Source of the DNA: Leidyana gryllorum EB-2025a
Lineage: Eukaryota; Protista; Apicomplexa
Assembly (NCBI GenBank): GCA_048772705.1
Contig: JBLWGC010000204.1
Coordinates: forward strand, 62,001-126,000
Length of the DNA stretch: 64,000 bases
Reading direction: 5' to 3'
The notes under the pieces are model-generated. The model ran no database searches. It saw nothing but the letters and a program-made list of their open reading frames with translations, and was not told where the DNA came from. Both the position numbers and the translations under genes were made by a program. Below, one piece after another: positions 3,567 to 28,995 of the stretch; within the stretch, counting starts at the first letter, position 1, and each line of letters opens with the position of its first letter.

Positions 3567-6416
3567 CTACCCTTTGCAAACGGCTGCTTGGACGTCATTT
3601 TCCCGCGGACTGTGAGTTGGTCCATGTCTCACACAATATCCCACCAAAGGTTTGGCGCCGCGAGGCGAGGCGTTACCGAGCTTCGACCCGCTTCGCGAAC
3701 CATCAAATGGTGTTACTGTGGAGACATCGATCACTTTCAGAGAGCTTCGGACCCCGGAGTCAGCAGCATCTGGGTGGAAATTTCGGATTGCATCGAGGAA
3801 CTCTTTATCGTCAACACCAGCAGCCTCAAAGTGTTTCAGATCCCACTTCGCGATTTGGGCTTGATGAGATGCCATCCAGTTTGCATTGGGGAAGGCGTCA
3901 ATGGCTCTCGTCAATTTTCCGTTTCGCCGAATATACTCGTAGAGAGATCTGTAAGTGTGTAACGAATTGGCTGTCGGCCGGTGTCCAATGATCACAATGT
4001 GCTTTCGTGCCAGTGTGACGGCTCTATGGACTCCATTGGGTCTCGTGCAGTATCCGACGCCTTCAGGGGTGATGAAGCTGAGAGGCGTGAGGATTATTAC
4101 ATCTTTCGCTTCCGCTCCCAAATGCTGCACTGTGAAGGATGAGATCTTGGCACGCAACCGGGAGGATTGTAATTCAGTGCTCTCTCTCAAGAGCGCATTG
4201 ATCAATTTAAGTTGCTTCCGAGAAGGAGCGAGAATACCAATATCTGTGATTACCTCACAGAGGGGCACAAGGAATTTGAGCAAATACTCCAAAGTCAAAC
4301 GAGCTTCAATCGGGCATTGGCTCAGATGCTGATAGGGTTGGCGCTTTTCGGGCGACTTGGGAGAGTTGAGAGCAGTATCATGTGGGTTTAGTACACAGTC
4401 CGAAGGTGCTTTGTTTATCCATTGCCAAACTGGGAGTGTCTGCGACAGTCTGATGTTTCGGACGGAAGGGTGGGCGGTGAGCTGTCCACTATAGAAATAT
4501 TCGGAGATCCAATCACTGATGAGCTGATTTGATCGCATTTCTTCTGTTAGCGGTATGAGGAACTCGCATGGATTCTTTTCCGACAGTGGTTGGGGATAGG
4601 TGGATTTCCCCCCGTTAAGCTTCTCGAGAATGGGGCTCAATTGCGGCTTGTCCCCCGCCAACACCACCCTGATGCCCTCCTTTGCCACAGCGCGAACTCT
4701 TTTCCCTTGGCAGAATTCTCCGTCGAGGATGACGTCAGTAAAATGCCGATGTTTCAACACTCGGCTCCCAGCCATTTGAGTCACACAGAAGACAGCTCGG
4801 GCCTCGCGCACAATGTCGTCCTTGACTTCCTCCAACAACGCCTGCGATCGACTCTGCAGCTGAGCAACATTCGATTCGATGCTCGCTATCTTTTGCGCTT
4901 CTCCACATTTAGAAAGCTTCTTTAGTTGCTGCTGTATACGGCGTTGAATGTCATTTCGTTGTACAAATTTGGGATGGAGCTTCCGACGTGAAGACCACAG
5001 TACAGTATCCAGCGGTCCGCCGCTTTTCTCGGCTGTTGAGAAACGCAAGATTTCTGATGTGTCCACTCCACCCAAGTCAAGCACCTTTTTTAGCAAGTCG
5101 TCGACAAGTGGACCGCATTCCGCGCACACTAAAATCTTGCATTCGGGAGACTGAAGGCGGTACCGTATATACTCCGCCAGTACTGTGGTCTTTCCGGTCC
5201 CTGGAGCCCCGTAGAGAATGGATAATGACTCCTGGGAGACTAACAAGGAGAAGGCATCGTACTGATGCCTGGTGAGACTTTTCGGAATGGTAGAATTGGG
5301 TATGTCTCCCCCAGTTGCGGGATATTGACGCGGCGCCATGGAAGTTGTGCCGTCATCATTGGGACTTTCGCGGCTCTCCATGTCTCGTGGTACCACAGGG
5401 CTTTGACTTGAAGAGGTCTGATCGCCACCGCTCGCCTGGGCGATTGCAGCGGGTACCACTGTGGTGGTCAATGCTTGTGCACATCGTGTAGGGAGGGGAC
5501 GCACTTCTGTGGTCTCAATGTCAATTGATACCCCCGAGTCTCGGGTCGTAAAGTGGTCATTGGTGGTGGGCGATAGGTTGATCGTGTCTGTCGTCAGAAA
5601 CTTCATCATTGTTTGTACACATTGTGGGTTAGGGAGGATGAAGTGCGTAGCATCTCTGGTAATTTGCACCCCAACGGCATCGACAGTGATTGTCGTGTTA
5701 GAGACGACTCTCTCGTGGGTCTTCGACCCTCCTCGACGAAGTCTACACAGAGGGACGCCTTTACATTTCACATGAGCCATCGACTGTCCATTAGGCATTT
5801 GGAAGACCACTGTGATTCTGCCTCCCTCGTCATTCACCGGAGAGCCATCAATGACTGAACTCTCCGGCCTCGAGCCGGGAGACGCGACGTTGGAGTGCCA
5901 GGCCGCTTCCACCGCGACGTCTCCTTTCTTCTCAGTGATGTTCGACCACGCTGGGGTGGCATTGCTCTTCTGACACCCCGACAGTGGTGAGAGGGTCGAG
6001 GAGTGTCCGCCGCCGTCTCTCCCCTCGGTAAGGGAGTGAGACGACAGTGCTGTCTCTTCGGGACCCCCGGCGGCGTGGGAGACTTGAGATCTGAGTCTAA
6101 CACTCCCCGAGGGCACCGACGCGACTACTGAGAAGTGCGTATGTCGATCGACGCTGTGCGTGAGTGGTAAAAAGCCATCCAACAGAACGGGGCAATGCCC
6201 TCCAGTCTTGGAAGACACCAGAATTCGTAATGGTGTATTCAGGCTCGACTCGCAGTTGTCATTCTTACGCCTCGACATCCATTCCTTCACGGCTCTGAAG
6301 GCCGTTTGACACATAATGGCTAGGGAACAGAGACAACCGATTTTTCCCAGTTCTGAACTACCATTGATCAGAGAGCTCAACACCGAAGGATTGGCGGCTA
6401 AACTTTGTGATGTCAT
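3567..6416 (-). CDS. IGHMBP2-like helicase paralog, copy 2, catalytically degenerate (pseudo-helicase)
   Basis: Keeps YGAPGTGKT and LAGDKPQLSP, but Ia=CAECGPLVDDL, II=ILDGEFCQ, V=FTVQHLGAEAKD and VI=GVHRAVTLAR. The 949-aa ORF is intact; start may be ATG 6314. Confidence 0.85.
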   Translation of the reverse strand: MTSQSLAANPSVLSSLINGSSELGKIGCLCSLAIMCQTAFRAVKEWMSRRKNDNCESSLNTPLRILVSSKTGGHCPVLLDGFLPLTHSVDRHTHFSVVASVPSGSVRLRSQVSHAAGGPEETALSSHSLTEGRDGGGHSSTLSPLSGCQKSNATPAWSNITEKKGDVAVEAAWHSNVASPGSRPESSVIDGSPVNDEGGRITVVFQMPNGQSMAHVKCKGVPLCRLRRGGSKTHERVVSNTTITVDAVGVQITRDATHFILPNPQCVQTMMKFLTTDTINLSPTTNDHFTTRDSGVSIDIETTEVRPLPTRCAQALTTTVVPAAIAQASGGDQTSSSQSPVVPRDMESRESPNDDGTTSMAPRQYPATGGDIPNSTIPKSLTRHQYDAFSLLVSQESLSILYGAPGTGKTTVLAEYIRYRLQSPECKILVCAECGPLVDDLLKKVLDLGGVDTSEILRFSTAEKSGGPLDTVLWSSRRKLHPKFVQRNDIQRRIQQQLKKLSKCGEAQKIASIESNVAQLQSRSQALLEEVKDDIVREARAVFCVTQMAGSRVLKHRHFTDVILDGEFCQGKRVRAVAKEGIRVVLAGDKPQLSPILEKLNGGKSTYPQPLSEKNPCEFLIPLTEEMRSNQLISDWISEYFYSGQLTAHPSVRNIRLSQTLPVWQWINKAPSDCVLNPHDTALNSPKSPEKRQPYQHLSQCPIEARLTLEYLLKFLVPLCEVITDIGILAPSRKQLKLINALLRESTELQSSRLRAKISSFTVQHLGAEAKDVIILTPLSFITPEGVGYCTRPNGVHRAVTLARKHIVIIGHRPTANSLHTYRSLYEYIRRNGKLTRAIDAFPNANWMASHQAQIAKWDLKHFEAAGVDDKEFLDAIRNFHPDAADSGVRSSLKVIDVSTVTPFDGSRSGSKLGNASPRGAKPLVGYCVRHGPTHSPRENDVQAAVCKG

Positions 6417-9621: not shown

Positions 9622-12495
9622 TCACTGGGTCTCGTCGGCCCATTCCGTCTCGTCGGTCGACTCTGTGTAGTCGTCTTCGGAGTCGTCGTCAGAGCCGTTC
9701 TCGCCGACAGGTCGCAGACTAAAGGCTTTGAGTAACGGAAGATAGTCCGTCTTCCATTTGCCGTCTGGGAAGAGATCGTTGGCGTCCAGGATCTCGCCGT
9801 TCTTCTTCACATGGGAATAGAGAGACTTGAAGTAGTAGTAAGAGCGGAAAGTTTGGCGATTGGCCACGATCACGAGATGTTTTCGAGCTCTGGTGATCGC
9901 AACATTCAGTCTATTTGGCTCTTTCACGAATCCGATACCCTGATAGGTATTAGATCGGACGAGACTGAGAAGAATTACATCGCGTTCTCCTCCCTGGAAA
10001 CCGTCAACGGTCGATACCAAAATCCTTCCAAACAGTTTTGAAGATCTTAGATCGTAGGATCTACGAATGAGATCCTCAATTAATAAAACTTGTTTCTTAT
10101 AGGGAGCTATTATCCCAATGTCATTGAAAGCTTCTTCGAGAGGCAACAGGGTCTCGTGCAAATACTGCACAATTAAGAGAGCTTCCCCCAAATTACAAAA
10201 GGAGTGCTCTTCCAAATGATGTAGCTCGGCTGGTTTGGTAGTAAGGAAGGTGGAGGAGTCTGTGACTGCCTTCAGCTCGGGACAGTCTTTGGCTGGAGTG
10301 GTGACCCATCGAAGAATTGGGAGTGTCTCGGACACTCTGATATCGCAAACCGATGGGTCAGCTGTGACTTGTCCATCGTAGAACTCCTCCGAACTCCAAT
10401 TACTGATTAGTTGATTAGACCGAAACTGCACCGTTAGCATTGTCGACAAGTTTCTTTCTGTATGTTCCATCAAACGGCCCATAAGGGTCGTTCCTCCAAT
10501 GGTATTGTTCTTTACAGTTGGCCCAAGCTGGTGATGATCTCCAGCCAGAATCAATTTTTTTCCGCGTTTCACCGCAATGAGAGCATCGATCTCCAAACAT
10601 TGGGCCGCCTCATCAATGATAACATAATCAAATTGAACCTCGTCGAGGTCACGGCTGGCCGCCGTGTTGCACGTTGTGAAAACGGCTCTCGCTTTTTCAA
10701 AGATGTCGTCCAAAATACCTTTGCGGACGCGGCTTTCCGTCTCCGAGAGGTCAGCAAACATTCGAGCTCCTTCGTCGTTTGAATCATAAGACTCGTCGTC
10801 GCTGACTTCTTCTACCACCTCCCCCAACTCTTTCTTCACCTCCTTCTCGTACTCGCGTCGCGCTCGGATGGCTTTCACCAAACTCTCGTAATTGGGGTGC
10901 TCCCTTACGACCGAAGTAAGCACCACAGGATACACCGGTTGAGCGAATCTATGAGGGGCGGCGATCCGTACAAACCAGGATCGATCGGCCCCTTCCATCT
11001 TGAGCATCCGCTCCAACAAATTATCCACTGCCACATTGCTTCCTGAACACACCAGAGTCTTGGAGTCAGGAAACTCAGTCATGAGATGAAAGATCAGAGA
11101 GGCGAGAGTGGTGGTCTTCCCGGTCCCAGGAGGGCCGTGGAGGATGGAGACGGGTCTTCGGGTGAGCAGAAAGTCAAATGCCTCCTGCTGCCCGGTACTG
11201 AGCCCCGAAGGCGTCTGGTTGGACGACGACGATGGCGGTCTGTCGACTATTCGCGCAGGCCCCGCTGAGGCCTTCAGGACGAATTTCATCACTGGTCGGA
11301 ATCGCAGTTCGATATCCGTGAGATCCTCTAACATTGCTTTACGCCGCTCGTGCGTAATCAAATTGATGCCGATGCCCAGAGTGATCTTGGACGATTCTAA
11401 TTTTCGAATCAAGTCGCCTTTGCAAAGCGATACCGGAATAGTCACATACACCACGTATTTGGTCACCCGCAGTACCACAGCCTTAACAATCGGCTCTATG
11501 TCTGCGAGCGTAGCGCGGCTATTCCAGTCGTCCCCGTCTTCCGAATGCAGAGTACAGGGATCCCCCCGCTTATATCGCACAAATGGTATTTGTCCACTAC
11601 CGGTCAATTTTAGTATCAGCATTTCCCGCCCCCTCTCCCCGGAAGGTCTGTGGGATCGATACTCCAAATTCTTGATGGCCCCACCCTTTTTGGCCAACCC
11701 CGCCGAGGTGATCTTGCTGAGTAGCGCCGCAGTTTCATCGACTTCTTGCCGCTTTTCCGCAATAATCAACTCCTTTTGAAAGACCTTCCAGTCTTCAAAT
11801 CCGGCTCGCGGTGACAACATTGCCACTGCCCGCTTCTCCGGTATGCGCGAGACACTGGGCTCCCACTGGGGCTCACGTCGGGTCCATACGGCGGGTGGGC
11901 GGCGTTGAGGCACAGGTAGCGCTGGCCACTCCGCATCATCGAGATGTGTCGAAGTTGTCGTCGACACTCCTCCCATGCATACGAAAATGTCATCATTGAA
12001 GCTGCGGAGGAAGTTTATGCTCCGACTCCCTTCGGCAGCCGGCCAAACGCATTCGTCCTCGTCCGAGGCAACTTTCGATTCGGTATGACACTCCTCCTCC
12101 TCCTCCTCTGTATCCCCAACCACTTGATGGTCATTGGCGTCGCCGTCGTCGCCGTCGTCGTTGTCGCCGTCGCCGTTGTCGCCGTCGTCACCCCCGTCGT
12201 CTGGGAGTGGTGAGGTTGTCTCCGTATCCTCAACGACTTGGTGCTCGCGAAAGACGTCGTGCGACTCGGGTGGAGACGTCTCATTTTTGGGGGGGTGGCC
12301 GGTGTGGGGGTCTGGGGCTGCTGAGTCAGCGTCCACGATCAGCGGTGGAGCAGTATCAGTGTTGTCGACGTCCTGCCCGCCCCCTTCAGAGGGTGAGGAG
12401 ACGTCAGGCAAAGGGGAAGGTCGATGAGCGGTGAGTGTCCTACTCCTTTCGATCCCCAGGAGATGGTGAAAGGTTTTCGAAAAGAGTCGGAACAT
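9622..12495 (-). CDS. IGHMBP2/Hcs1-like SF1B helicase, copy 4, intact motifs, acidic disordered N-extension
   Basis: HGPPGTGKT, CSGSNVAVDNL, IIDEAAQ, LAGDHHQLGP, LTVQFRSN, STVDGFQGGERD, RLNVAITRAR. First ATG is at 12495 (the ORF track starts at TTG 12501). Confidence 0.92.
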   Translation of the reverse strand: MFRLFSKTFHHLLGIERSRTLTAHRPSPLPDVSSPSEGGGQDVDNTDTAPPLIVDADSAAPDPHTGHPPKNETSPPESHDVFREHQVVEDTETTSPLPDDGGDDGDNGDGDNDDGDDGDANDHQVVGDTEEEEEECHTESKVASDEDECVWPAAEGSRSINFLRSFNDDIFVCMGGVSTTTSTHLDDAEWPALPVPQRRPPAVWTRREPQWEPSVSRIPEKRAVAMLSPRAGFEDWKVFQKELIIAEKRQEVDETAALLSKITSAGLAKKGGAIKNLEYRSHRPSGERGREMLILKLTGSGQIPFVRYKRGDPCTLHSEDGDDWNSRATLADIEPIVKAVVLRVTKYVVYVTIPVSLCKGDLIRKLESSKITLGIGINLITHERRKAMLEDLTDIELRFRPVMKFVLKASAGPARIVDRPPSSSSNQTPSGLSTGQQEAFDFLLTRRPVSILHGPPGTGKTTTLASLIFHLMTEFPDSKTLVCSGSNVAVDNLLERMLKMEGADRSWFVRIAAPHRFAQPVYPVVLTSVVREHPNYESLVKAIRARREYEKEVKKELGEVVEEVSDDESYDSNDEGARMFADLSETESRVRKGILDDIFEKARAVFTTCNTAASRDLDEVQFDYVIIDEAAQCLEIDALIAVKRGKKLILAGDHHQLGPTVKNNTIGGTTLMGRLMEHTERNLSTMLTVQFRSNQLISNWSSEEFYDGQVTADPSVCDIRVSETLPILRWVTTPAKDCPELKAVTDSSTFLTTKPAELHHLEEHSFCNLGEALLIVQYLHETLLPLEEAFNDIGIIAPYKKQVLLIEDLIRRSYDLRSSKLFGRILVSTVDGFQGGERDVILLSLVRSNTYQGIGFVKEPNRLNVAITRARKHLVIVANRQTFRSYYYFKSLYSHVKKNGEILDANDLFPDGKWKTDYLPLLKAFSLRPVGENGSDDDSEDDYTESTDETEWADETQ

Positions 12496-13953
12496 TAGCA
12501 ATGATGAGTTCTTTGAGGGCTATTTTTGGTCTTTGTGTTAACGTTTGTTTGGTCGCACAGGTTTGTAAGATCCTCAAGTGTTCTCGTGGCTCACTCATGT
12601 TGCAGAGCGGCCCCAGCTATGTATGAGAGGGCGAGAGGATAAAAAAGAATAGAATAGCATGGCTGTGCCAATGTGTTGCGTCCCTTTCCACGAGTATCTG
12701 AGCCCCAAAGTGGGGGTTAGGTCTGACGAGCGTGAGGGATACACAGAACAGACTTTTGATCATTCAGCTTCTCTGACGGGTGATCAAGGGAGCGATCTTA
12801 GATCAATATGCATCCATCGATCTGCGTAGATTGATCGAGTTGTAAGGTTGTCAGTGGCAGGTGGGCAGTTTGGCGTCGATCTATCGGGCGATCGGGTCGC
12901 CAACTGTAGACTTCTCACCATGTCCACCATCATGTATGTAGACGTCGGCCGAAACCATCATCATTTGAGGTGTGAACCTTCCTCCCGTACGCCACCGAAG
13001 GCGGAATTGTAGTCAGCAGAAACAAAAGTCTGGGCTAAATATATGCGGCCGAGGTTTTAGCCAAAGGAAAAAACTCTGACAAAGGCGTATTTACTTGTGA
13101 ATGCCACATCGTATGCTTCTGCGTCGAGGAGCAGAGCGCGATTGGGTGACGTTGAAACTTAAAAAGATAGCAGTAGGCCTCCGAGTGTCTTACACTGTAC
13201 TCTGTGGGCGAACGGGGGTGATTAATTGGGTGAGTGTACAGATTCATCATTGAGGAGCCTCCTTCTAAAGTTGGGTGAAACAACAATCTCCCGCTCAGAA
13301 TCGTCTGTCCAAATGGCCTCTGCGTTTTGTGGATGTGGATGAAGTGATATGCGAAGAAATCTTGATGATACGGTGAAATGACCCAGGATATACACATACA
13401 GAGGGGGAAAGATTACGATGTGCCTCGTTGTGTAAGATGGAACAAAATGAGCGGTCGTAGAACGTAGAGGACGGACGAGCTCCACTTGCAACAACAAGAG
13501 AAAAGAAGAGGATAGTACAAGTTAGGAAGGCAAGAGTCAATCACTTCGTCGCTCCGTTCGATCATTCGACCGACCGGAGGCTGGCTCATCCGAACAACAT
13601 GGGCAATCAATCAATCAAATGAGACTCTGACCAAGAACTCAGGTCTCTGTCCGATATCGAGATTCCTGCACTCTGTCTTAATCTTAATCTCAATCTCTCT
13701 CTCGTGCGTTCTCGCCCCCTCTCCCTTCCTCGTAATGGACATTACGAGGAAGAAGAGGAAGGAGATTAGAATAAGCATTCCCGAAAAAGAAAGAGGGGTC
13801 CAACTTTGAACCGGTGCCATAAATCCATCTGTCCACGGCTGAGAGAAGTACATAGAGTAACGATGAGATAGAAACACCAATATATTACAACACGACACGC
13901 CCTCAATACCCTCTCATACACAAAAGGATACTGAGAACATTCATAAAGAGGGA

Positions 13954-16319: not shown

Positions 16320-16349
16320 GTCAGATCAACCACACCCGGTTGATCTGAC
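16320..16349. repeat. Perfect 12-bp stem hairpin, followed by (GT)~9 at ~16404-16421
   Basis: gtcagatcaacc-acaccc-ggttgatctgac. Confidence 0.8.
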
Positions 16350-16512
16350 CGATCAAGTGATAAGTGCTCCAAACTTGTTGTCCGAACAACGGACCCATTT
16401 TACGTGTGTGTGTGTGTGTGTGGATCAGCTTGAGCACCGGTCAGTATTTTAATAGGTATCAACTAGCAAGCAGGTCTGCATCATACATATATCATTGCAT
16501 GTAATCAGAGGT

Positions 16513-19500
16513 CTAACTAGGCAGATTGGATGAGGAGGATGAAGAAGTTCCCGTTGTGGATTGTTCTCGGTCCATTGAGTATGTTGCCCATAGGGCCTTG
16601 TCAACGTAGTGGGGGGCTGTGACAGTGAGGCAGGCGATACTAGCGGCCACCGCCAATTTCAACAGATCTTCCATGAAGAGATCGGGTCTGAGATGCTGTC
16701 CAAAAGAGCGGGCGAGATCTTTTAGTTGAGTATTCTCAGCATAGTCATCACGCGCAGTTTGAGGACAGCCCCCATTTCCCAGCATTAGATTGTCGCTCAT
16801 GATGGTGAGCACCATTTTCCTGATTCCCATTTTCCATTCATTGGTTTCCTGTGTTTGAGGAGTCATCATTGGGGCACTCTCACGCGGGGATTTTGAGGAT
16901 CTGATTTCACGTCTGGGGGAGGCTACCAGGAGGGGCCACTCTTCAGCAACACCATTCGCACCCGCAGGATGTTTGGCTATCTGCGAGAGGATCCAATTCT
17001 GCGATGTTTCGGTCATCGCTTTCAGAGCTTTCGGGGAGTCTTCCAATAGTTGATAGGCAGTTGATAACACTGAGGGGCCTGAGATCGCGGCCAATTGGAG
17101 AACCCCCAATCGACGATGTACTTCGTCGTTCCACGCGAAGGTTTTGGGGCACATGGATTTGATAAGGGAGCGTTCGAGGATCGATAAGATGGTCCAGACA
17201 TTGAAACTTATGCGTCCTCGCTGGTCGTTTGAGAGCACAACACCCGGTGTCTTGGGCGGGATGGGGTCTTCCCAATCGTTGTCTGACTCAGCAGTGGGCT
17301 CAGGTTTGTGTGGCACAACGTCAAGACTCAGACCTTCAGCTATTGCTCTTCGAAAACGCATGGAATCTCTGACGGGGTGATATTTAGGTCGTGGGGGAGA
17401 GAGAACCGGGGAACAAAGGTCGGTTGGAGGTGAAGTGAGAGAGAAGGAATGGGCTGTCGCGAATCCGGGGGGAGGGGGAGAGAGATTTCGTGTTGTGGAA
17501 CAGTCAGGTAGCATACGTAGAGTGCTCCGTACCAGTTGGATTGGATTGACGTTTGTCGATAGGTGACTGGTGTTGTTGTTAGAATACATCGTTACATTGG
17601 AATTAGCTCTTCCATCGGTTCGCTTGCCTTTGCCCCAGCTGCTGCGGGTCCATCCGGGTGTTATAGGACGTCCCGCTCGGTCAGTTTGACACACGCCGTT
17701 TCGGAAGTTGGAATCATCTCCCGTACTCTGGTCCCACCGATACCCACCTTTGGCCCGATTTGCAGCTCCTTGCGGCAACGGTTGCTGCTGATGCATTTGC
17801 TGGTTGTAGGAGGTCTGCAACACAGTCTGAGGTGCCACGGTCTGTTGCTGAGGAGGAGCCACATTCTCCAAGTCTCCACTGTCGACATAGTTCATTGCGG
17901 TTTCAAACCCTGAAAACACTTTGGTCCACACCACTCACCCACTTGTTCCAACTTACAGTCTTGTTGATTCAACATGTTCACCCGTGTCGGCTGTTGTCTG
18001 GCGGTCTGTGGTTGGGGGGCTTTTGTGCGACGTTCCAGCCGTCCTTTGGCGGTCGATTCACCGGGTACGCCCATCAGTTGACGCTCCGTCAGGCTTCCAC
18101 CGAGACACAAGTGCTCTTCAAGATGTGTGGCCGCCCACACTTCTTCTTGTTCCGGAATGCGAGCCAAAGCCGGTTGCACTTTCGGTGAGCTCAATCCCAG
18201 CATGCGCAGCTTGTTCACATCATCCGGGCCCGCCCAGGGACCTGTCTGCTGACCATCCGGCGGGGGCGGCGGCGGTATGGACTGCATCGACGAGCGCATT
18301 CGGCCCGCATAGTGGTTTCCAAGCTGACATTGCGCTGCACCCAACGTCTGGGATGGAATGTGCGTCGGCGCCTGAAAGTGGCTGATCACGGTGTTGTGGT
18401 CCTGAGATTGGTATATCTGGTGTGCAGCTGTCCTGGACTGCAGTTGAGTGGACCAAGTAGGCCTGAAGCCGTGACCTGTCACGTAGACACCACCCGGAGC
18501 CTGAGAGCAACGGTATGTGGCGTCGGCACGCGAAGGCATCACCTCTGTATATGCGGCTTGAGAGTTTGCGTCAATGTATTCACCACCACACTGGGGAACG
18601 AGAGTGTTGTCGGCGACCAAGTCGAATTGGTTCTCAGCTGGTTGATTCCAAGGCTCAGGAACTTTTGATCTGTCTGTAGGGTTGTGGGCACCAAACTTCT
18701 CCTCCCACATTCTTACCGTCCGACTTTTCTGCCTTGGGAGGAATTTGGAAGTAATCATAAGCCCACCAACTCTGCGGATGGGTCAGAAGTGATGGACCGT
18801 CCGATCCAGCGGGCGACCAGTTCGGGTCCTTCGAACGCTTCACTCTGTGGGCCCTGGCTCCATCTTCCAGTAGCAGGGAGTCAATTCCCGAAACCACACA
18901 CTCATGAAGGTCCTGCCAGTCTTCGTGCTCGTTTTGTTTCTCCTTCTCCACCGACGGGGTGCCCACTGTACCCCACCGTGCCCTCGACTGTTTCATCCGG
19001 GCAGCCTTCATCTGCCGGTGGGTCCGGACCCTCGGGTACAACCCCTCACACTGCGGTCGTCGCTGCACACTGAACCCCCTACTGCTCCGTCGTCGGTCGG
19101 GTGTTACAAAGGTATCACCCAAACTGACAGGCGACGACGGAGACACTGACGGTGGTGAGGGTAACATGAAAGCAACGGGCCGCTTCCCGGACGGCGGAAC
19201 CATTCGGGTCGGAGATGATTTCCTGGCGGGGCTGGTAAGTTTCCCACCCGCCGTACCTTCGCGTTCCCCTGTTGCGGACCCGTTCGGGTCGGGGACGACA
19301 TGTATTGTCGGCGGAGAAGACAATGGAGACGACGAGCGCGGAGACGACAAAGGCGACGACGAGCGCGGAGACGACAAAGGCGACGCGCCGAGGGCCTCTG
19401 CTTCCAACTGTCGTAACCTATCTCTGACGGCATCGGCGTCCAGTTGTCGTAGGGTATCTCTGAAAGCCTCCACCTCCTCTACTCTTTCTGGAGAGCCTGA

Positions 19501-22500
19501 GCCATTGACGACATTTCGCCAGGGTACGGGCATCTTGAGTCTCGAGCCGACCGCCGCGTTCCATAGCGGGCTGCCTGTCAGCTGGGGTTCGGGTAGCGGA
19601 GGTGGCTGACCGATCTCCTCGCCGGTAGTGATCTCCTCGATCTGTGTCTGGAGATCGGTATTCATAGAAATCTTTTCGGTCTTGAGTGTCCAAGGCAGAT
19701 CGGTCTGGGACGGCTGCCCTGAAGTACTCCTTAAGGCGACATTGGCGGGCAGATTTCGGTCGGATTCTCCGCCCTCAGGCCGCGAAGGCTCTTTGCTCGC
19801 ACCAGTAGAAGGTAACCGAATGATTTCCGTCTCTGTAAAACTGTCCTTTGGACCTCCTTCCGCCCCTTTCGTGGCGGTGTTTCGCGGGGTCGCCCTCCCG
19901 TTGCGCTTCTTTCGGGGACTCTCCCTCCCGGATTTGGTCGGCTTCCGCGGACTCTCCGTGGCAGTCTCCACGTTCTTTTGAGAAGTCTCTGCCACATTCC
20001 GTGGTGTGTTTGAGTCTGTGGTAACGTTGTTCCATGGAGTCTTAGTCTGAGCGGTGATGGCTTCGGGGAATGCCGGAAGAACGGGGACCTTATTACTTCT
20101 CCAGTCCTCCAGTGCCCAATTGGACTGTGAGTCTCGTCCTTTGTCTTTGGGCGAATTACGAAGTCTGGAAGTCGGAGAATCTCGAAGGCGTGCCCTCGGC
20201 GAATCACGATTTCGGTGCTTCGGGTCCCGAACTTCCACCCAGGGGGCTCCCGACGACCCATCGTCGTCGTCGCAGTCGCCACCACCACCGAACTCTGGAC
20301 TGCGCTGCTCGACTGTTTGCTGTTCTTTGCACCACGCCTCCAGATTCTCGAAGGCCTCTTCCACCTTCTGGTTGGACTCCGACTCCACTTTGTTGGCACC
20401 AACGCTCGGCGACTCATTGACCGGAGAGAGTATGCCGAATCGAGGAGAACTTTTCGCTGGAGAGCTCGCACCCCCGTCAGCCGGCCCCTTTGCAGGAGAG
20501 CTCACAACAAACGGTTTAGTTGCCACAGCGGCAGCGTAAGATTTGGGACCCGGCCGGGAGGGACTCATTGCAGTCGGCCGCTCCACTCCAGTGGCAGCAG
20601 CAGGCACGCCTTGAGTGTACGAGATCGGAGAATGCCCGGTTACATGAGCGAGGATCTCTTCCTTTGACTTCTTCCACTTGTTATGTTGCGCTCTGGCGGT
20701 GACTGGAGGGTTTGCCGCAGCCTGACTGATCCCGACGGGCCCCTCTGTCTTCGAGGAGACTTCCACCGCTTCAGTCGTTCCGGCAAATGTATCATGTCGA
20801 CGAGGACTCGAATTGGGTGAAGATCCCGGGTTAAGTGAGGATTTCAGCGTTGAAGTGTTGTCGGCGTATTTCAATGCGAGCGAAAGGCCGTCTTTGATCA
20901 TCGACTGCTTTGTGGTTGGCCTCGGCCGTGACACACTTTGACTTGCCGCCTTCTCCACTACGGAAGCCCATGTCGGAGAGGCTGGCCAGATAATCTTCTG
21001 ACTGCCGACATCCGCCTTTTCAGCCACCTTCCGCTGTTCCTTATCCTTCACCACGGCTCCGTCGACGCCACTCGTCTTCGGCTTTGTGCTTTTCTTCGCC
21101 TTAAGAGCTCCACTTTCCGTCCATTTGGCCATCGCTTCTTTCACCGCGAGTGAATACTTCCTCCGCGGAGACGGCGCATCTCCCGAGAGAGCAGCCCCGA
21201 CACCTTTGCTCGGAGCAGAAACCTTCTCGGCGGGCACAGATTCCTCGGGTACAACCGCTGCTGCAGTCTGCTGCAGCGTACTCGTCGCTTCCGCCTGCTG
21301 AGAGGGTAAAGCTTCTAGAGCCGTCTCCCGAGGTAAAGCAGCAGCGGACGCCGTCTCCTTGAGCACAGTGGTAGCGACCGCCGTCTCTTGGGGTACAGCA
21401 GCAGCGGAGGCCGTCTCTTCGGCTACAGCAGCAGCAGCAGACGGCGTCTCGTTGGGTACAGCAGCAGCGGGCGCCGTCTCCTCCGCAACAGCAGCGGGCG
21501 GTGTCGAATTCTTCACCAAAGTTGGGGCACCCGATTCCTTCGGGGAAGGAAGTGATGGCATCTTCTTGATCGGCGCGGGGGCAATTGTCTCCTTGGGTGA
21601 AGCACTGGCTGCTGTCTTCTTGGTTGAGGCAGTCGGCCCCGTCTTCTTCGAGGAGCCGGTCATTGAGGTCTTCTTGGACGGAGCCGGCTGCTTGGACAGA
21701 GCAGGCGGCGGTGCCTTTTTCGGTGAGGAAGCCTCGAGAGGGGGCAAAGTGGCTTCGGGGAAGTCGGACGACGGCTTTGTCGCGAGTGATTTCGATACGA
21801 TAGAGGGGTTAGAGCCAGACTTAGCGGCACCTTTCCCATTGGTCGCTCCTTCGACCGCTCGCACCACCTCATCCACTGTCATGGGAGGAGCGTTTGCCAT
21901 CTGTGAGGCTTTGGCTGTGTCCTTCTTCTTGCTCTTGCCATTCGACTTCTTAGCGGTCGCCTTGCCGGTGGGCTTGCTCTCGGCTTTGGTTGTGACTCCT
22001 GATCGAGTGTCGGCCTCTTTCTTGCGTATCTGCTCGCCGGTCGATACTGTCGTCCGGCTCTCAGATCTATGGGAGTCGAGCGGCTTCAGGGCATCCGGAG
22101 TTTGGAACGGTCTACGAGGAGCCGGAGGGGCTCCGGCTAAGCGAGTGCCGGTGCAGGGCTCCTTGGTACCAAGTTTCGCCAGCTTGGCCTCGACCGCGAA
22201 CGGATCATCCAGAGAGTCGTCGAAAACGCAGTCTCCTGGCGCCCCTATGTCCGAGACATCATCGGACTCATCAAAGGTGGCTTGTCTCCAAGCTTTCATG
22301 CGTTCGAGGTCATTCGGCATGAAGGCATCCAGCCCACCCGGGATGCATCGACGGCCCATTTGACTGCTGTCTGGACGACCCTCACTTCTGGCGCACTCCC
22401 AGCAATCCGAAGCGGCTGTTGACGGGCGGTCGCCAGCCCCTCCGTTTCGGAGTACACCGTGTTTGGGTCGCAGGAGCCTCTCGCTGCTCTTCCGTGAGGT

Positions 22501-25500
22501 CGGTCTGGAAGTGGAGGCACCACTGTTGAGCGCCGACTTGGGCTCCGGTAAGATCGGTTTGGTGGGCTGTTTAGCTCGACGCGTTGCTGACCACGGATTC
22601 AGAACGACGAGTCGATGTCGCAAGATACTCTCCGTAGTGGCCGCATGATCCTTGAGCCTACCGCAGGTACCCATGAATGCATTGACTGGTTTGGCCAAAG
22701 GAATTCGGGTGGCCTGCCGAGCCTTTGAAGAGGGCGGAATATGCGGTGCCAGTCGCTTGGACTTTTTCCCAGGCTGTTTGGCCTTGCGAGCGGCCATCTC
22801 GGGGCTGCCCAGAGACTTGACAACATGGACGGTTGGACCTCCGGGAGCCAGAGGAACTGCCATGACAATCTCCTCGGGCACTCCGGGCAGATCCGCTATA
22901 GTGCGCAGCTTTCGAACTCGATCAGCAGACGTATCGACCCTCTTCTGAGTCCAATCGACCTCTTTCTCATACACATCGAGTCTCCGTTCGAGAGTCATAT
23001 TGTCAGCGAATGTCACGGGTTTGCGTTGTTCGAGTTTCATCATGACGCGCGCATAAGGAAAGATGTCCTCGAAGCGGCCTGGAAATATGTATTTGCGGGT
23101 GTTGATGTTCTTCGGCAGATTCATCCGAAGTAACGTCCCCCGGCACGGTCTGTAGGTTTTGTAGAAACAGTTGGTGGTCTCCGTGGGTATCTGGTGGCCA
23201 CCGACAAAGTCAACATCCAGCGGCTTTCCTGTGATGAGGCGCTCCACTGCCTCCCAATTGCCGGTGATGAAGCGTACGTGGCCGCTCATGCGAGTCAATT
23301 GAATGGAATAATCTCCAGAAAAGTCATCTTTCCAGACAGAATTCACACGTGTACCAGTGAGGACGCCATAGTGAGTCGCAAAGACCTCAGCGGGAGGGCT
23401 GCAGAATAGTCGCAGTCGGCTGGTGTTCCTGAGATACAGTGTTGCTTTATCGCCCTTGGCATTGACTTCTAGATGGCCTTCGGCCTCTCGCAGCCCACCT
23501 ACAACCAGTCACCACGACAAGTCGTGGAAGAATAATGAATGCTCACCATACACGGGGAAGGAGTCCTCGCCGTCCTGGATTTGACCAACCACTGGCGGGG
23601 GTTTCCTGCGGGGTGTCGGTCCGAGGGGAAACTGGTCAGACCTGTGAGCTGTACAACATGTGGAGTGACTTTTGCGGACATCGATTGGCACCTACGCGGA
23701 TACTCGTATTCGGCCCACGGCATATAGACTTTGGCGCCCGGCCCGACCTCCAAGTCAGAACCGGCACTCAGGACTTTGATCGGATGGTCTCCACTGAGTA
23801 GCTGAAGAGCGGGTTGCTCCACTCGCAAGAACCATCGCTTGCCATCACTTCGCAGCAGCTCCACCTCGTGTTGGTACTTGGGATCGCCTCTGAAGGACTT
23901 TAGGCGGAACTTGGTGGGGACTACCCATGTGTCCTTTCCAATGAAATATCGCGCTCCGGTAAAGTCTTTCATAGTGAAGGGTACGCACTCATCCTTCGAG
24001 CGGCACACGAGGATCTTGCAGGGATCACAGTCTTTGGTGTCGATCGCGGGCTTGTCATCCAATTCTCGTTCCCAGAAAGAGGCGATATATCTACGTCTCT
24101 CCACAAATTGTTGGCGGTACGTCTGTTCCCACTCCGCTTTGGTCAGTGAGGCAATCATTGAGCGCATTCCACCGAGCACCTCAAAGTGGATGTAATAGTG
24201 GTCAGGTCTCATCGGGACGTCATGTTTGGAGAGGGACACCCATTTATTGACAACGAGTGCCGGTCCGTCCATCCATCTCGGTATCTCCCCAACCAAAGTC
24301 TCCGGTACCGGTGGCAAGGTGAGTTGAGTTGACTCCCGAGGTTGGTCAAAACCACCTTTCACATAACCCATATACTCGGCTGTGAAGGTTCTGCCCAAGT
24401 CCATACGCATCACCTCGTAGTTATCCATTGTCTTCCAGCGAGGAGTCGAGCGGGCGGGTTGGAATAAGGACCATAGTGCCCATAGCGGCTGTGCGAGCTG
24501 AAGTTTAGAAGACGGACCCTGGATACGGACATCGTCTGGGCACGGGAGTTCTTTGATGGGCGGATAGTACATGACTCCCTTGACGAGTCGTTCAATTCTC
24601 TCGGGATGTGGCCGTCGCTCGAATCTCACCCCTTTGACTTCTCGGAAGTCGGTGTGCACATCGTTCATAAACTTGTACTTTGCGACCTCGGTTGCCCGGG
24701 GAGGATCCTCGGCATTGAGTATAAGATATCTGCTTTCCAAGAACGAGTGGAAGCACGAGTAGAAGGGGCTCAGTGAGGTGATGCGAGGTATGTTCCCGAA
24801 AACATTGAAGATCTGTGTAGCTCCCAACATACAGAGGAGGAAGTCGGCTGGAGACATTAAGTGTCCATCACAACTCGTCGTGGCCCCAGCCACCAACGAG
24901 ACCAATACAACTTCAACAGTCTGGAATCTCAGTCTCTCAGGCGGCCACACATAGAGTGTTTCCTCGTCCAGGAAACGGTCTAATCCATACTCCTTCTGCA
25001 ACAGATAGTTAAAATAATCACGTTGCTTCTCGTGATCAGATATGATCGCAATCTTCCAGCCGTGAGCCAGAGTAACTTCCCAGTAGTCTCGCAGACTCAT
25101 CATCACTTGAAGCGCCTCAGCCCGATTCACGTGATGGTTGGCATCCCAGCTGATGGGTTCGTCGCCACTCCACACAGAGTGGTCGAAGTCCCACGTGGCA
25201 CTGTCAATCCACGCGAGGCTTGGGACGGATGCATCGACCCATGTGGGGGGCCGCTCGAGTCCGTCATCATGAAAGTGGTCGGGTCCCAGGAGATGGTGAA
25301 GAGCGGCAACAGTTAAGCCTGGCACATGGGTAGGGAGGGTGGACCGATAGATCATGCGATGTTTCTTGTCCAATTCTTGTCTCATCATGAAACAGACCAT
25401 TGAAGGATAGGGAGTATACATTCGTTTGAACGGGTGAAGAGTGTGTTCCAAGCGTTCACGCGGCAAACCGTCATCAATTAGGATGCAGCTCGAACTGCGT

Positions 25501-27006
25501 GAGCTCGGGATAATTGTGTCCAATTCGCTCGTGGAAGCAGCGTCTACCACAATAACATAGTCAAATATACGTCCCTGGCGCTCCATTTCGGTCGGTACAT
25601 TCTCAACGACGCCCAAACACGTGTCGAAACAGACCTCCGCCTCCCAGATCAAACGCATTCTTTCAGTGCGCAGGCCTTCTGGCACAAAGACGTCATCGTC
25701 GTACCGGAAGTCCTTATAGATGTTGCGTTCCGGCATCTCTAACAATCTATTGCGATCTTGCGGAGCCAACCCATGGCAGACACGAGCTGGGTGACCATAG
25801 GGAATGTCTTCCACACACAAGTATTGAAGGTATAGGGGTACACACTTAGGTGAAGAGAGAATGAGACACCTTCTGCCTCTGAATTGATCTGTTGACAGGG
25901 AGAAGAATATTGAACGGTCGCGCCGCGTCTCACCAATTGTGTGCCATAGTATCTTTCTACTTGTGGCTACCACCAGAATGCGAGGACTGCGCTCGTAGAG
26001 CTTCTGAATGGTCGAGAAGATCGTTCCGATGTGATGGTGGCCATCTGTAGCCCTGATGACACTGTACGGCTGCGTTGCGGCGGCCCCGAAGACGGCCTTC
26101 CTCATCGCATCGGAGAGACTCCGATCCGTCACCAGCAATCCGGAGTCCAGGAGGGCCAGATTGATGTGGGCCGGCGGCGGGCCTTCGGCCACAAAGTCTA
26201 CAGATGGGCTGCAGTAAAGAGAGAGAGAAATGAGATGGATATTTCGGAGAGACTCACTTGGCCAAACGACTTCTGACCCATCGGAAAGTCTCGACGAGGC
26301 GGATGTTGTCGATCGATCTGCGTTCGGATTGAGTGATGGTGAAGGTGGAGCTTTTGTGCAGATCGAGAGCAATAACATCAACTGCGTGAACCACCACTTG
26401 GATGGCTTTCCGGCCAGAGATGTTGAGGAGGTATCCTACGGCACAGACGGTGTCCAGTGACAAATCATAGTTGGCTACAGAGTCGACGTGGAGGTCTACT
26501 CGGTGTATGCGGTTCAAGCCAGGGCCACTGACATTGAGGTGTCGGCGTTCGGATTCCGGCACAATAAAGGTAAGTATACTTGTATGTTTCCCGGAGTACA
26601 GATTGTCGCAGAGTCTAAGGCCACGAAGTCGCCACGTTATGCATCGATCGAATAAGTCCAGATTGTGCGGCTGGTATCGTGCGGCTGCGTGTTCTGCCAC
26701 ATCTTGTACTATACTGGAGAAGTGAGGCCGGATCCATTTCTCTATTGCTGGAGCAATAGGCCTCTCAATGAGGTTGGGGGGCTCTTGTTCTTGCCCGTTC
26801 CCGAACAATAAGAGAGCAAAGAGCTCGTCAAGATCCCATCTTTGAGATTCATAGAGCAAGTGAGGATGTAGAATGTCGCGATTTTCGAATAGCCGCGCCA
26901 TTCTGGGTCCCGTTACTCTCCGCGATACTTTGGAAGGATAGTCCCGGACATTGATATGATAAGCAGGCGCCGATTCTGGCACGGATAGATATCGTTTCCC
27001 AACCAT
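16513..27006 (-). CDS. Giant ~3,419-aa protein: N-terminal degenerate Upf1-like helicase fold, unknown globular region, long disordered region and C-terminal helical domain (6 exons)
   Basis: GT-AG introns 26209-26257, 23649-23695, 23499-23546, 18674-18716 and 17910-17956 (43-49 nt) join the ORF-track segments in frame; spliced length 10,260 nt. Helicase remnants: RILVVATS, EAEVCFDTC, FDYVIVVDAAS, NRAEAL, IAIISDHEKQR, VEVVLVSLV. Confidence 0.78.
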
Positions 27007-27279: not shown

Positions 27280-28281
27280 TCAATCGTCATCGTCTTCCAC
27301 GCTGCCGCCGAGGCATCCGGCTAGAAACGGCAGAAGGCGTGCGAACAGAGGCATGGGTTTTGCCCTCTCGAAGCTGATCGCCTGCGTGTTTCTAACGGTT
27401 CCTATCTGGCTGGCTTTCCGGCCGACGGCACCAGAGACTGACGATGGCACCCCGTCATTGGCGGTAGTCGTTGTACTCGCCATACTCAAAGACCGATGTG
27501 GAGACTGATCGCCCCCACTGCCCGGTACCTCTGTATATCCTTTGATTGTCCGCTGGTCTTTGATGGCGAGAGGCGGGGGGATGTCTGCAAGCCTGGAGAC
27601 GACTAGATGACTGGGTGTCCTTTTCCCCAAAGTCGTCGACTGTGTTGCCGCTATCTGTGCCCGACTGCCAAATGAGTGGATCTCGACGTGAAAGTCGGAC
27701 TCTCGATCTCTATTGCCTGGGTGATGGGCGTAGACGGATAGAGTGTCGGAAACACTGACTAAACTCTGGATTCTTGTAACTCGGCGAGGGTCCAGAAACA
27801 AGGGCGTCGCCAACTTGATGACTTCCTCCACGGTCTCCGGGAGAGCTACCAGATCCCAAAGTTCCCACATTCCAAGGAGAGTGTGATCGCGGCCACGGCA
27901 TATGATGGTACGTCTCTGTACTTTCCGGTTGCTGAAGTACTTACACAAAACAAACCAGTGCCAGCTCCCTCGGGCCAAACGCATAGAGATGTGAGAAGCC
28001 CTGAAGGCTGGATCTATATCACCCAAACGCTCGAACACGCGCTTCACCAAAGAGGCTCCATTGTCTACACACCGAAATAAGGTGTGTAAGACTGTATCCG
28101 CCTGGTCAACTTGATCCTTTGCCAGACCAAGTTGTATATTACAATGCGCAGTCATCATGACGACAAAAACAAACACACCGGCACTCTGCTGTCCCACACA
28201 TTTCCGTTCCAACAATGGATTAATATTGTTCGAGTCTGTGATAGAGAAAGAGAGAAGAGAGAATAACAGCAACGCTAACAA
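27280..28281 (-). CDS. Hypothetical protein
   Basis: 333-aa ORF with globular-looking composition; no motif recognised; real start probably the internal MMTAH. Confidence 0.5.
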   Translation of the reverse strand: MLALLLFSLLSFSITDSNNINPLLERKCVGQQSAGVFVFVVMMTAHCNIQLGLAKDQVDQADTVLHTLFRCVDNGASLVKRVFERLGDIDPAFRASHISMRLARGSWHWFVLCKYFSNRKVQRRTIICRGRDHTLLGMWELWDLVALPETVEEVIKLATPLFLDPRRVTRIQSLVSVSDTLSVYAHHPGNRDRESDFHVEIHSFGSRAQIAATQSTTLGKRTPSHLVVSRLADIPPPLAIKDQRTIKGYTEVPGSGGDQSPHRSLSMASTTTTANDGVPSSVSGAVGRKASQIGTVRNTQAISFERAKPMPLFARLLPFLAGCLGGSVEDDDD

Positions 28282-28290
28282 GAATCTGAA

Positions 28291-28995
28291 TTAGCTCGCG
28301 ACCACATTGGCGAAGGGCAAAGCCTCAGCAACTGCCGCCTGAATGTTCTCCGGTCGCAGATGGCTCTGGAAATCAGTGTTCTTCGCGTACTCCGCGAGCT
28401 TCTCTACTTCAGCCAATGAGGGGGCGTCTTGGTCTACCAATAAACGCACTTGAGCACTCAAGTGCTCAGCTTCAGCAATGACATCATTGTCGAGCATCTC
28501 CACCGGGATGGGTACCTCCACGAACCGGGGAACATAGATAGGTACCTTCACCACACGGTACTTGGGACGCAGAGTTGGCATCACGAGTTCGTATTGAGTC
28601 TCAGTGGCAACAGGAACGGGGATAGTTCTCTCAACATCCTGAGGCACTTCAACAGTCACATATTCGGGAACTTCGACGTTCACGTAGTGGGGAACTTTCA
28701 CCTCCTTCACGACCACTTTCTCTTGAATGTCGGGAACTTCAACCACACGCTCCACGGGGACTTCTTTGTACTCGATTTCAGGCACCTCCACTACTTTCTC
28801 TTTGTACACAATCTTTGGAACTTCCACAATGCATTCCTGGTACTCAATCTTGGGCACATGTGTCACTCGCTCCTGGTACACAATCTCGGGCACCTCCACA
28901 ATCTTTTCGATGTACTCAATTTCCTCAGTTGCCATTGGAGGCTTCGTAGTGGCACTGCTCGTAATCCGACTGTCGTTGTGGTCTGTGGTGGTCAT
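28291..28995 (-). CDS. Alveolin / inner membrane complex (IMC1-family) protein
   Basis: Repeated EKIVEVP / EKVVEVP / ERVVEVP Val-Pro-Glu motifs typical of alveolins. Confidence 0.9.
   Translation of the reverse strand: MTTTDHNDSRITSSATTKPPMATEEIEYIEKIVEVPEIVYQERVTHVPKIEYQECIVEVPKIVYKEKVVEVPEIEYKEVPVERVVEVPDIQEKVVVKEVKVPHYVNVEVPEYVTVEVPQDVERTIPVPVATETQYELVMPTLRPKYRVVKVPIYVPRFVEVPIPVEMLDNDVIAEAEHLSAQVRLLVDQDAPSLAEVEKLAEYAKNTDFQSHLRPENIQAAVAEALPFANVVAS

Follow-up and report, generated by a model that had tools for sequence, protein, structure and literature searches.

IGHMBP2 (SMUBP-2) is a Upf1-like helicase of superfamily 1B (SF1B) that carries the Pfam families AAA_11 and AAA_12 and has a known structure (4b3g; PMC3505976). 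Loss of catalytic motifs within a helicase fold has also been described, in the DEAD-box-like yeast pseudo-helicase Utp25p (PMC9539457). This study concerns a stretch of 64,000 nucleotides (nt) of DNA from Leidyana gryllorum EB-2025a (contig JBLWGC010000204.1, positions 62,001 to 126,000; hereafter the window), in which an earlier note, made from the letters alone, had proposed that apparently separate open reading frames (ORFs) on the minus strand splice into one giant pseudo-helicase gene. The analysis reported here favours that proposal at a probability of roughly 0.62. A single gene of six exons and five introns would encode a protein of 3,419 residues that combines a dead IGHMBP2-type core with a disordered tail, and this protein, we infer, acts as a non-catalytic scaffold or adaptor.

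Compared with IGHMBP2, the giant protein has the same two RecA-like domains, which are collinear from the Q-like segment ahead of Walker A to the end of RecA2. However, it has lost all of the ATPase motifs and scores below the Pfam thresholds, neither a 1B barrel nor an R3H domain or AN1 zinc finger could be recognised in it, and it is five times longer, with ~1,800 disordered residues. Its closest sequences in the whole genome are four helicases encoded on the same strand in the same neighbourhood (the cluster helicases, hel1 to hel4). These also have disordered tails, but they appear to be intronless whereas the giant gene has introns, and three of the four keep every catalytic motif, which the giant does not. 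Utp25p resembles the giant protein in that the helicase fold is kept while the catalytic motifs are degenerate, and it has been retained as a structural or adaptor component. However, Utp25p belongs to the SF2 DEAD-box branch, whereas the giant is an SF1B protein that is far larger, apparently lineage-restricted and not known to be part of any complex.

A stop map of the three minus-strand frames gave open segments of 252, 978, 60, 1,617, 296 and 473 codons, which overlap or abut one another. When five GT-AG introns are removed, with consistent phases, ATG 27006 is connected to the stop at 16513 in a single frame of 3,419 codons, and both this frame and the five intron lengths given in the earlier note (49, 47, 48, 43 and 47 nt) were re-derived exactly from the sequence. 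The parts of the proposed gene are as follows.

27006-16513, minus strand: giant gene, lying between an unknown gene and an RGG-rich gene
26258-27006, minus strand: exon 1, 249 codons and 2 further nt; its ATG (27006) has an A at -3 and a G at +4
26209-26257, minus strand: intron 1, 49 nt, GTGAGT...CTGCAG, pyrimidine-rich, GC 0.43 against 0.58 in the flanks
23696-26208, minus strand: exon 2, 837 full codons, with the degenerate helicase core and the start of an unassigned ordered-looking region
23649-23695, minus strand: intron 2, 47 nt, GTAGGT...GTACAG, the least certain of the five
23547-23648, minus strand: exon 3, 102 nt, 33 full codons
23499-23546, minus strand: intron 3, 48 nt, GTGAGC...TTGTAG, with an in-frame stop at 23511-23509
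18717-23498, minus strand: exon 4, 1,593 full codons, the first ~210 residues ordered-looking and the remainder low-complexity
18674-18716, minus strand: intron 4, 43 nt, GTAAGA...CTACAG
17957-18673, minus strand: exon 5, 238 full codons, Gln/Pro-rich and low-complexity
17910-17956, minus strand: intron 5, 47 nt, GTAAGT...TTTTCAG
16513-17909, minus strand: exon 6, 464 codons and a TAG stop; AT-richer intergenic DNA follows

The window is eukaryotic; it has very short introns and an alveolin (IMCp) gene at 28291-28995, and the intron size that the earlier note had called locally typical is matched by the glycine-cleavage P gene of the same window, whose two homology-anchored introns are 44 and 43 nt long. 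Intron size and GT-AG ends alone are not informative, since a bare in-phase GT-AG pair spaced by 40-50 nt was present at about half of the ORF-pair junctions in the window, and such pairs were rejected as evidence of splicing for that reason. When the stricter form GTRRGN...YAG was used with the same length range, introns were found at 7 of 277 plus-strand junctions and 11 of 177 minus-strand junctions. Four of those 11 came from the giant gene, and several of the matches in the window are real introns of other genes. All four testable junctions of the giant gene carried such a strong intron, and with a chance of ~2.5% per junction this is far beyond what would be expected by chance.

The coding character of the locus points in the same direction. 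In each exon the proposed frame was the best of the six in codon usage, at 0.05-0.13 bits per codon compared to 0.07-0.11 for held-out control genes. The five introns have a GC content of 0.43-0.51, similar to that of intergenic spacers (0.44-0.51), while their flanks are at 0.54-0.58. True AT-richer spacers occur only at the two ends of the gene, with 273 nt before ATG 27006 and 348 nt after the stop at 16513. Additionally, the stretch of 69 codons that leads from intron 3 to the earliest in-frame ATG of the 1,617-codon ORF had a coding score of +11.1 bits, when known genes have a median of 13.7 bits and the 95th percentile of intergenic sequence is 1.5 bits. The 1,617-codon ORF therefore cannot start at its own ATG and needs upstream exons. 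Intron rarity, codon usage and GC content are the sequence statistics that support one spliced gene, as had been claimed, and from them we infer that the five introns are actually spliced.

The origin of the core was addressed with searches and fold predictions that were run exon by exon. The degenerate core (24705-26132, minus strand), which is of the Upf1-like, IGHMBP2-type SF1B kind, covers residues 26-501 of exon 2 and includes both RecA-like halves, so that the detectable helicase portion of the protein is residues ~276-751. The earlier note had the N-terminal ~800 residues following the helicase motif order; this holds for the core, while the first ~275 residues match nothing. A profile of 50 IGHMBP2-family sequences aligned with exon-2 residues 26-501 (hel1 236-716) at an hhalign probability of 97.4% (E 1.1e-11, 427 columns), and hhalign of exon 2 against the four cluster helicases gave a probability of 94%. 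BLASTP with exon 2 found hel3 (4e-8), hel1 (1e-6) and hel4 (2e-6) over 314-355 residues at 20-24% identity. In hmmsearch, a profile of the four neighbours scored 18.6 bits on exon-2 residues 186-505, compared to a maximum of 3.2 bits in 2,000 shuffles. On residues 1-185 alone this profile was marginal (p ~0.04), and it is the 50-sequence profile alignment that extends the match to the Walker A half. A search of the whole genome (15.5-Mb assembly) with exon 2 returned hel3 as the only non-self match. The ten best neighbours of exon 2 in the Atlas language model were all AAA_11/AAA_12 helicases, at 0.94-0.95.

Structure-based searches gave results consistent with these. The Upf1-like fold anticipated by the earlier note was recovered on what is a poor exon-2 model, with IGHMBP2, UPF1 and Sen1 placed first. 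In Foldseek the top hit was IGHMBP2 4b3g (9e-11) and UPF1, ZNFX1, Dna2 and Sen1 were also among the first but weaker, with template-modelling scores of only 0.18-0.24. VIA-align gave Z values of 14-17.5 for Sen1, UPF1 and IGHMBP2, compared to ~11 for generic DEAD-box RecA matches. The RecA2 half of the model superposed on UPF1 at 3.4 Å over 176 residues. Taken with the profile alignment over both RecA-like halves, the BLASTP matches to the neighbours and the language-model neighbours, the fold searches support the derivation of the core from a helicase, as the earlier note had suggested.

All motif positions of the core were placed by MAFFT in collinear order against the paralogs, and their state is as follows.

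26025-26051, minus strand: relic of motif I (Walker A), ATDGHHHIG in place of GPPGTGKTT in the paralogs; Lys and Thr lost
Motif Ia: partly kept, ILVVATS in the giant protein
25533-25547, minus strand: relic of motif II, VDAAS in place of DEAAQ in the paralogs
Motif III: GDHHQLGP in the paralogs; DDG, a 7-residue insert and HTLHP in the giant, with Gln lost
Motif IV: FRSN in the paralogs, YRST in the giant
Motif V: TVDGFQGGERD in the paralogs, PPERLRFQTVE in the giant
24810-24830, minus strand: relic of motif VI, MLGATQI in place of VTRARKH in the paralogs; both Arg lost

The replaced Walker A, the change from DEAAQ to VDAAS and the missing arginines of motif VI, all of which had been read from the sequence earlier, are thus found at their aligned positions. 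Neither GxxxxGK[TS] for Walker A nor DExx for motif II (Walker B) is present. What remains of the core is mostly its hydrophobic skeleton, at 18-22% identity to the cluster helicases. Since Lys and Thr are gone from Walker A, Asp-Glu from motif II, Gln from motif III and the arginines from motif VI, and motif V is lost too, the core is predicted to be incapable of acting as a motor. With fold homology kept, catalytic residues lost and long open frames of gene-like codon usage, the data support classing it as a putative pseudo-helicase.

Several observations weigh against this reading and should be noted. On exon 2 Pfam AAA_11 reaches only 14.8 bits (E 0.025), below its gathering score, and AAA_12 gives no match (the gathering score is 27 bits for each family). 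The AlphaFold2 (AF2) model of exon 2 is poor, with a predicted local distance difference test (pLDDT) score of 41.9 from a five-row alignment, and since that alignment held helicase paralogs the fold match is corroboration and not independent proof. With respect to the gene model, no RNA run was listed for a 9,951-base query of the giant locus, every downstream ORF has some in-frame ATG, and the donor consensus in this genome is loose, with confirmed introns beginning GTGATC and GTACAC. Searches with exon 2 and exon 6 found no ortholog of the giant gene in which intron positions or purifying selection could be checked. With respect to a nucleic-acid-binding scaffold, the role suggested in the earlier note, the RNA-contact motifs Ia and V are eroded as well.

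Exon 2 had no relatives by word search, by exhaustive HMMER over 1.84 billion representatives, among PDB sequences or in a metagenome locus scan, and exon 6 had none by word search. In a control search, hel1 had a single relative with 50% identity, located on a Logan contig of 6.7 kb, and all others were at 30-35%. This contig (Logan ERR10900114, L003:2157-6661) carries two tandem helicases that are 50% and 48% identical to hel1. The contig is from a related organism, so the tandem helicase array predates the host species; no part of the giant gene matches it. As the databases hold at most one sparse relative of the host, the orphan status of the giant partly reflects sampling.

The alternative that departs least from the proposed gene keeps it single but replaces intron 2, exon 3 and intron 3 with one 53-nt intron beginning GTATGG (23551-23499), which would leave four introns and a protein ~14 residues longer. 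The frame arithmetic works, the acceptor is identical and intron 2 contains no stop in the upstream frame, so its removal is not forced. However, codon usage over these ~30 codons favours the two-intron version, since exon 3 scores +3.8 bits in the proposed frame and -4.6 bits in the read-through frame, and GTGAGC is a better donor than GTATGG. These stretches are too short for a firm call, and we regard the 53-nt intron as possible but rather unlikely. An improbable reading is that the locus holds two or more genes, for example a pseudo-helicase of ~1,150 residues that terminates at the 23499 stop, and disordered proteins starting from ATGs 23289, 18758 and 17895. There is an in-frame ATG in each ORF, no RNA run links them, and ATG 17895 overlaps the upstream stop as ATGA (17892-17895, minus strand), although this overlap is probably a coincidence, as it lies just inside exon 6 after intron 5 and in a eukaryotic context. 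Separate genes would have to overlap or abut without a spacer, whereas real spacers here are 110-1,450 nt long and AT-richer. They would also leave unexplained the coding-like 69 codons ahead of ATG 23289, and the strong short intron that sits at each break at odds of ~2.5% per junction.

The remaining alternatives concern whether the gene is alive and whether its product is active. In the first of them, a copy of a cluster helicase has died and become fused to downstream junk, and the breaks are its frameshifts and nonsense mutations, not introns. In keeping with this, the paralogs appear intronless while the copy has five breaks, all catalytic motifs are gone and no relatives were found. However, a sequence free of constraint could not have kept frames of 978 and 1,617 codons open down to ~20% identity to the paralogs, which argues that the gene has been maintained as coding; with the local base composition, a 1,617-codon frame has a chance of ~1e-25. 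All exons show gene-like codon usage, and at every break there is a canonical intron, of the size usual here and with lower GC. We regard decay of a duplicate as very improbable. Even less credible is an active NTPase or helicase with a non-canonical nucleotide site. One Gly of the P-loop (G56) is kept, as are Asp and Pro of motif III and Arg of motif IV, but the Walker A Lys and Thr, the catalytic Glu of motif II, motif V and both motif VI arginines are replaced together, and to our knowledge no SF1 helicase works without those residues.

Outside the core, the single spliced gene would encode several further regions, of which these could be delimited.

23697-24704, minus strand: ordered-looking region after the core, exon-2 residues 502-837, running on through exon 3 into exon 4
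21320-21495, minus strand: tandem repeat, 30-nt unit x 5.3, ETA(S/P)AAAVP-type decapeptides
19311-19385, minus strand: tandem repeat, 27-nt unit x 2.8, SSPLSSPRS nonapeptides
16555-17229, minus strand: C-terminal region, exon-6 residues ~227-451, predicted all-helical, with an EEWPLL motif

Pfam and NCBIfam searches of all pieces gave only the weak AAA_11 match on exon 2. The first ~275 residues (exon 1 plus the initial 25 residues of exon 2) are ordered-looking. About 305 residues precede the Walker A position in the giant, a length comparable to the 266 of the paralogs, and hhalign found no similarity between exon 1 and the N-termini of the paralog helicases, where the 1B barrel lies. Following the core, residues ~752-1330, which take in the last part of exon 2, all of exon 3 and ~210 residues at the start of exon 4, look ordered by composition and match no family, in line with the unrecognised region of ~500 residues noted earlier, though it is longer, at ~580. 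Within it, exon-2 residues 502-837 have an order-promoting fraction of 0.35-0.47 and an AF2 pLDDT below 50, with no Pfam or NCBIfam family match and no signal against the helicase profile. The same part of exon 2 contains a cysteine cluster, C-x2-C-x5-C-x5-C (23985-24029, minus strand, exon-2 residues 727-741), which matched no family and may be a metal-binding knuckle.

The protein then becomes low-complexity for ~1,800 residues, up to about residue 200 of exon 6, with an order-promoting fraction of 0.08-0.30 and a composition rich in Ser, Ala, Pro, Thr and Lys. This agrees with the disordered stretch of more than 1,500 residues that had been claimed, and the two repeats reported within it are both present at the DNA level. 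Exon 4 has a net charge of ~+58 and contains 36 SP dipeptides. The Ala-rich repeat region is also covered by a 334-codon antisense ORF (21359-22363, plus strand). This has a codon score of about zero, below that of the sense frame, and most likely represents a shadow ORF in low-complexity, GC-rich sequence. The helical C-terminal domain of the earlier note stands insofar as AF2 predicts helices (in the last ~230 of the C-terminal 270 residues), but the model on which it rests has a pLDDT of only 40. Atlas offered an ankyrin-like or helical-repeat lead for this domain (0.90, 140 shared features) that was too weak to adopt. Single copies of an acidic-[FW]PxL motif are found in the tail of hel1 (EEDFPSL), the N-terminus of hel4 (DAEWPAL) and the C-domain of the giant (EEWPLL), where shuffling gives an expectation of ~0.05 per protein.

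The other genes of the neighbourhood are listed here from the upstream to the downstream side of the giant gene.

~28150-27280, minus strand: unknown gene of ~290 residues, upstream neighbour of the giant gene, between it and the alveolin gene
16164-13954, minus strand: RGG-rich gene, adjoining the giant gene downstream
12501-514, minus strand: four tandem helicases in the order hel4 to hel1, all with strong AAA_11/AAA_12 matches
9625-12501, minus strand: hel4, a cluster helicase
3570-6416, minus strand: hel2, the second cluster helicase
514-3459, minus strand: hel1, matching human IGHMBP2 (4b3g) at 7e-54 across the whole helicase domain

The ~290-residue gene (27280-28150) had no family match, and its protein ends in an acidic EDDDD tail. 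This ORF and the alveolin gene were considered as extra exons of the giant and rejected, as a stop and the 273-nt AT-richer spacer lie ahead of ATG 27006. The 348-nt spacer on the other side contains a (CA)11 tract followed by a hairpin of ~30 nt (16320-16425, minus strand), between the stop of the giant gene and the ATG of the RGG-rich gene. These elements belong to the RGG-rich gene, and the upstream spacer of the giant itself has none like them. Among the helicases, hel2 has an intact Walker A (GAPGTGKTT) but DGEFCQ where DEAAQ is expected, and its AAA_11/AAA_12 scores are far below those of its neighbours. It may be a partly degenerate copy.

As four IGHMBP2-type helicases stand in tandem 14 kb downstream on the same strand, local duplication from this array is the most likely origin of the core. 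The duplicated copy would then have ceased to be a motor and acquired introns as well as a disordered extension of great length. In the non-catalytic scaffold or adaptor proposed here, binding would fall to the dead core as a static module, and the basic, SP-rich and probably phosphorylated tail would be a multivalent platform. Any binding of nucleic acid may owe more to this basic disordered tail than to the core. The giant protein might cooperate with the helicases next to it and with the RGG-rich protein. A more far-reaching version, which we consider a long shot, is that the giant is the non-catalytic hub of a gregarine-specific helicase island and recruits the active IGHMBP2-like helicases nearby and the RGG-rich protein into a lineage-specific RNA-protein assembly, perhaps through the common acidic-[FW]PxL motif and the dead core. 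The same-strand block of genes would in that case evolve and be regulated as a unit.

This find does not open a long-standing question, and the function of the giant protein is conjecture. A practical consequence is that ORF-based gene callers would break the locus into five unrelated hypothetical proteins and miss its helicase ancestry. If the gene is as proposed here, it would clearly illustrate how a motor protein duplicated in tandem became a very large protein without enzymatic function, in a parasite lineage that has been poorly sampled.

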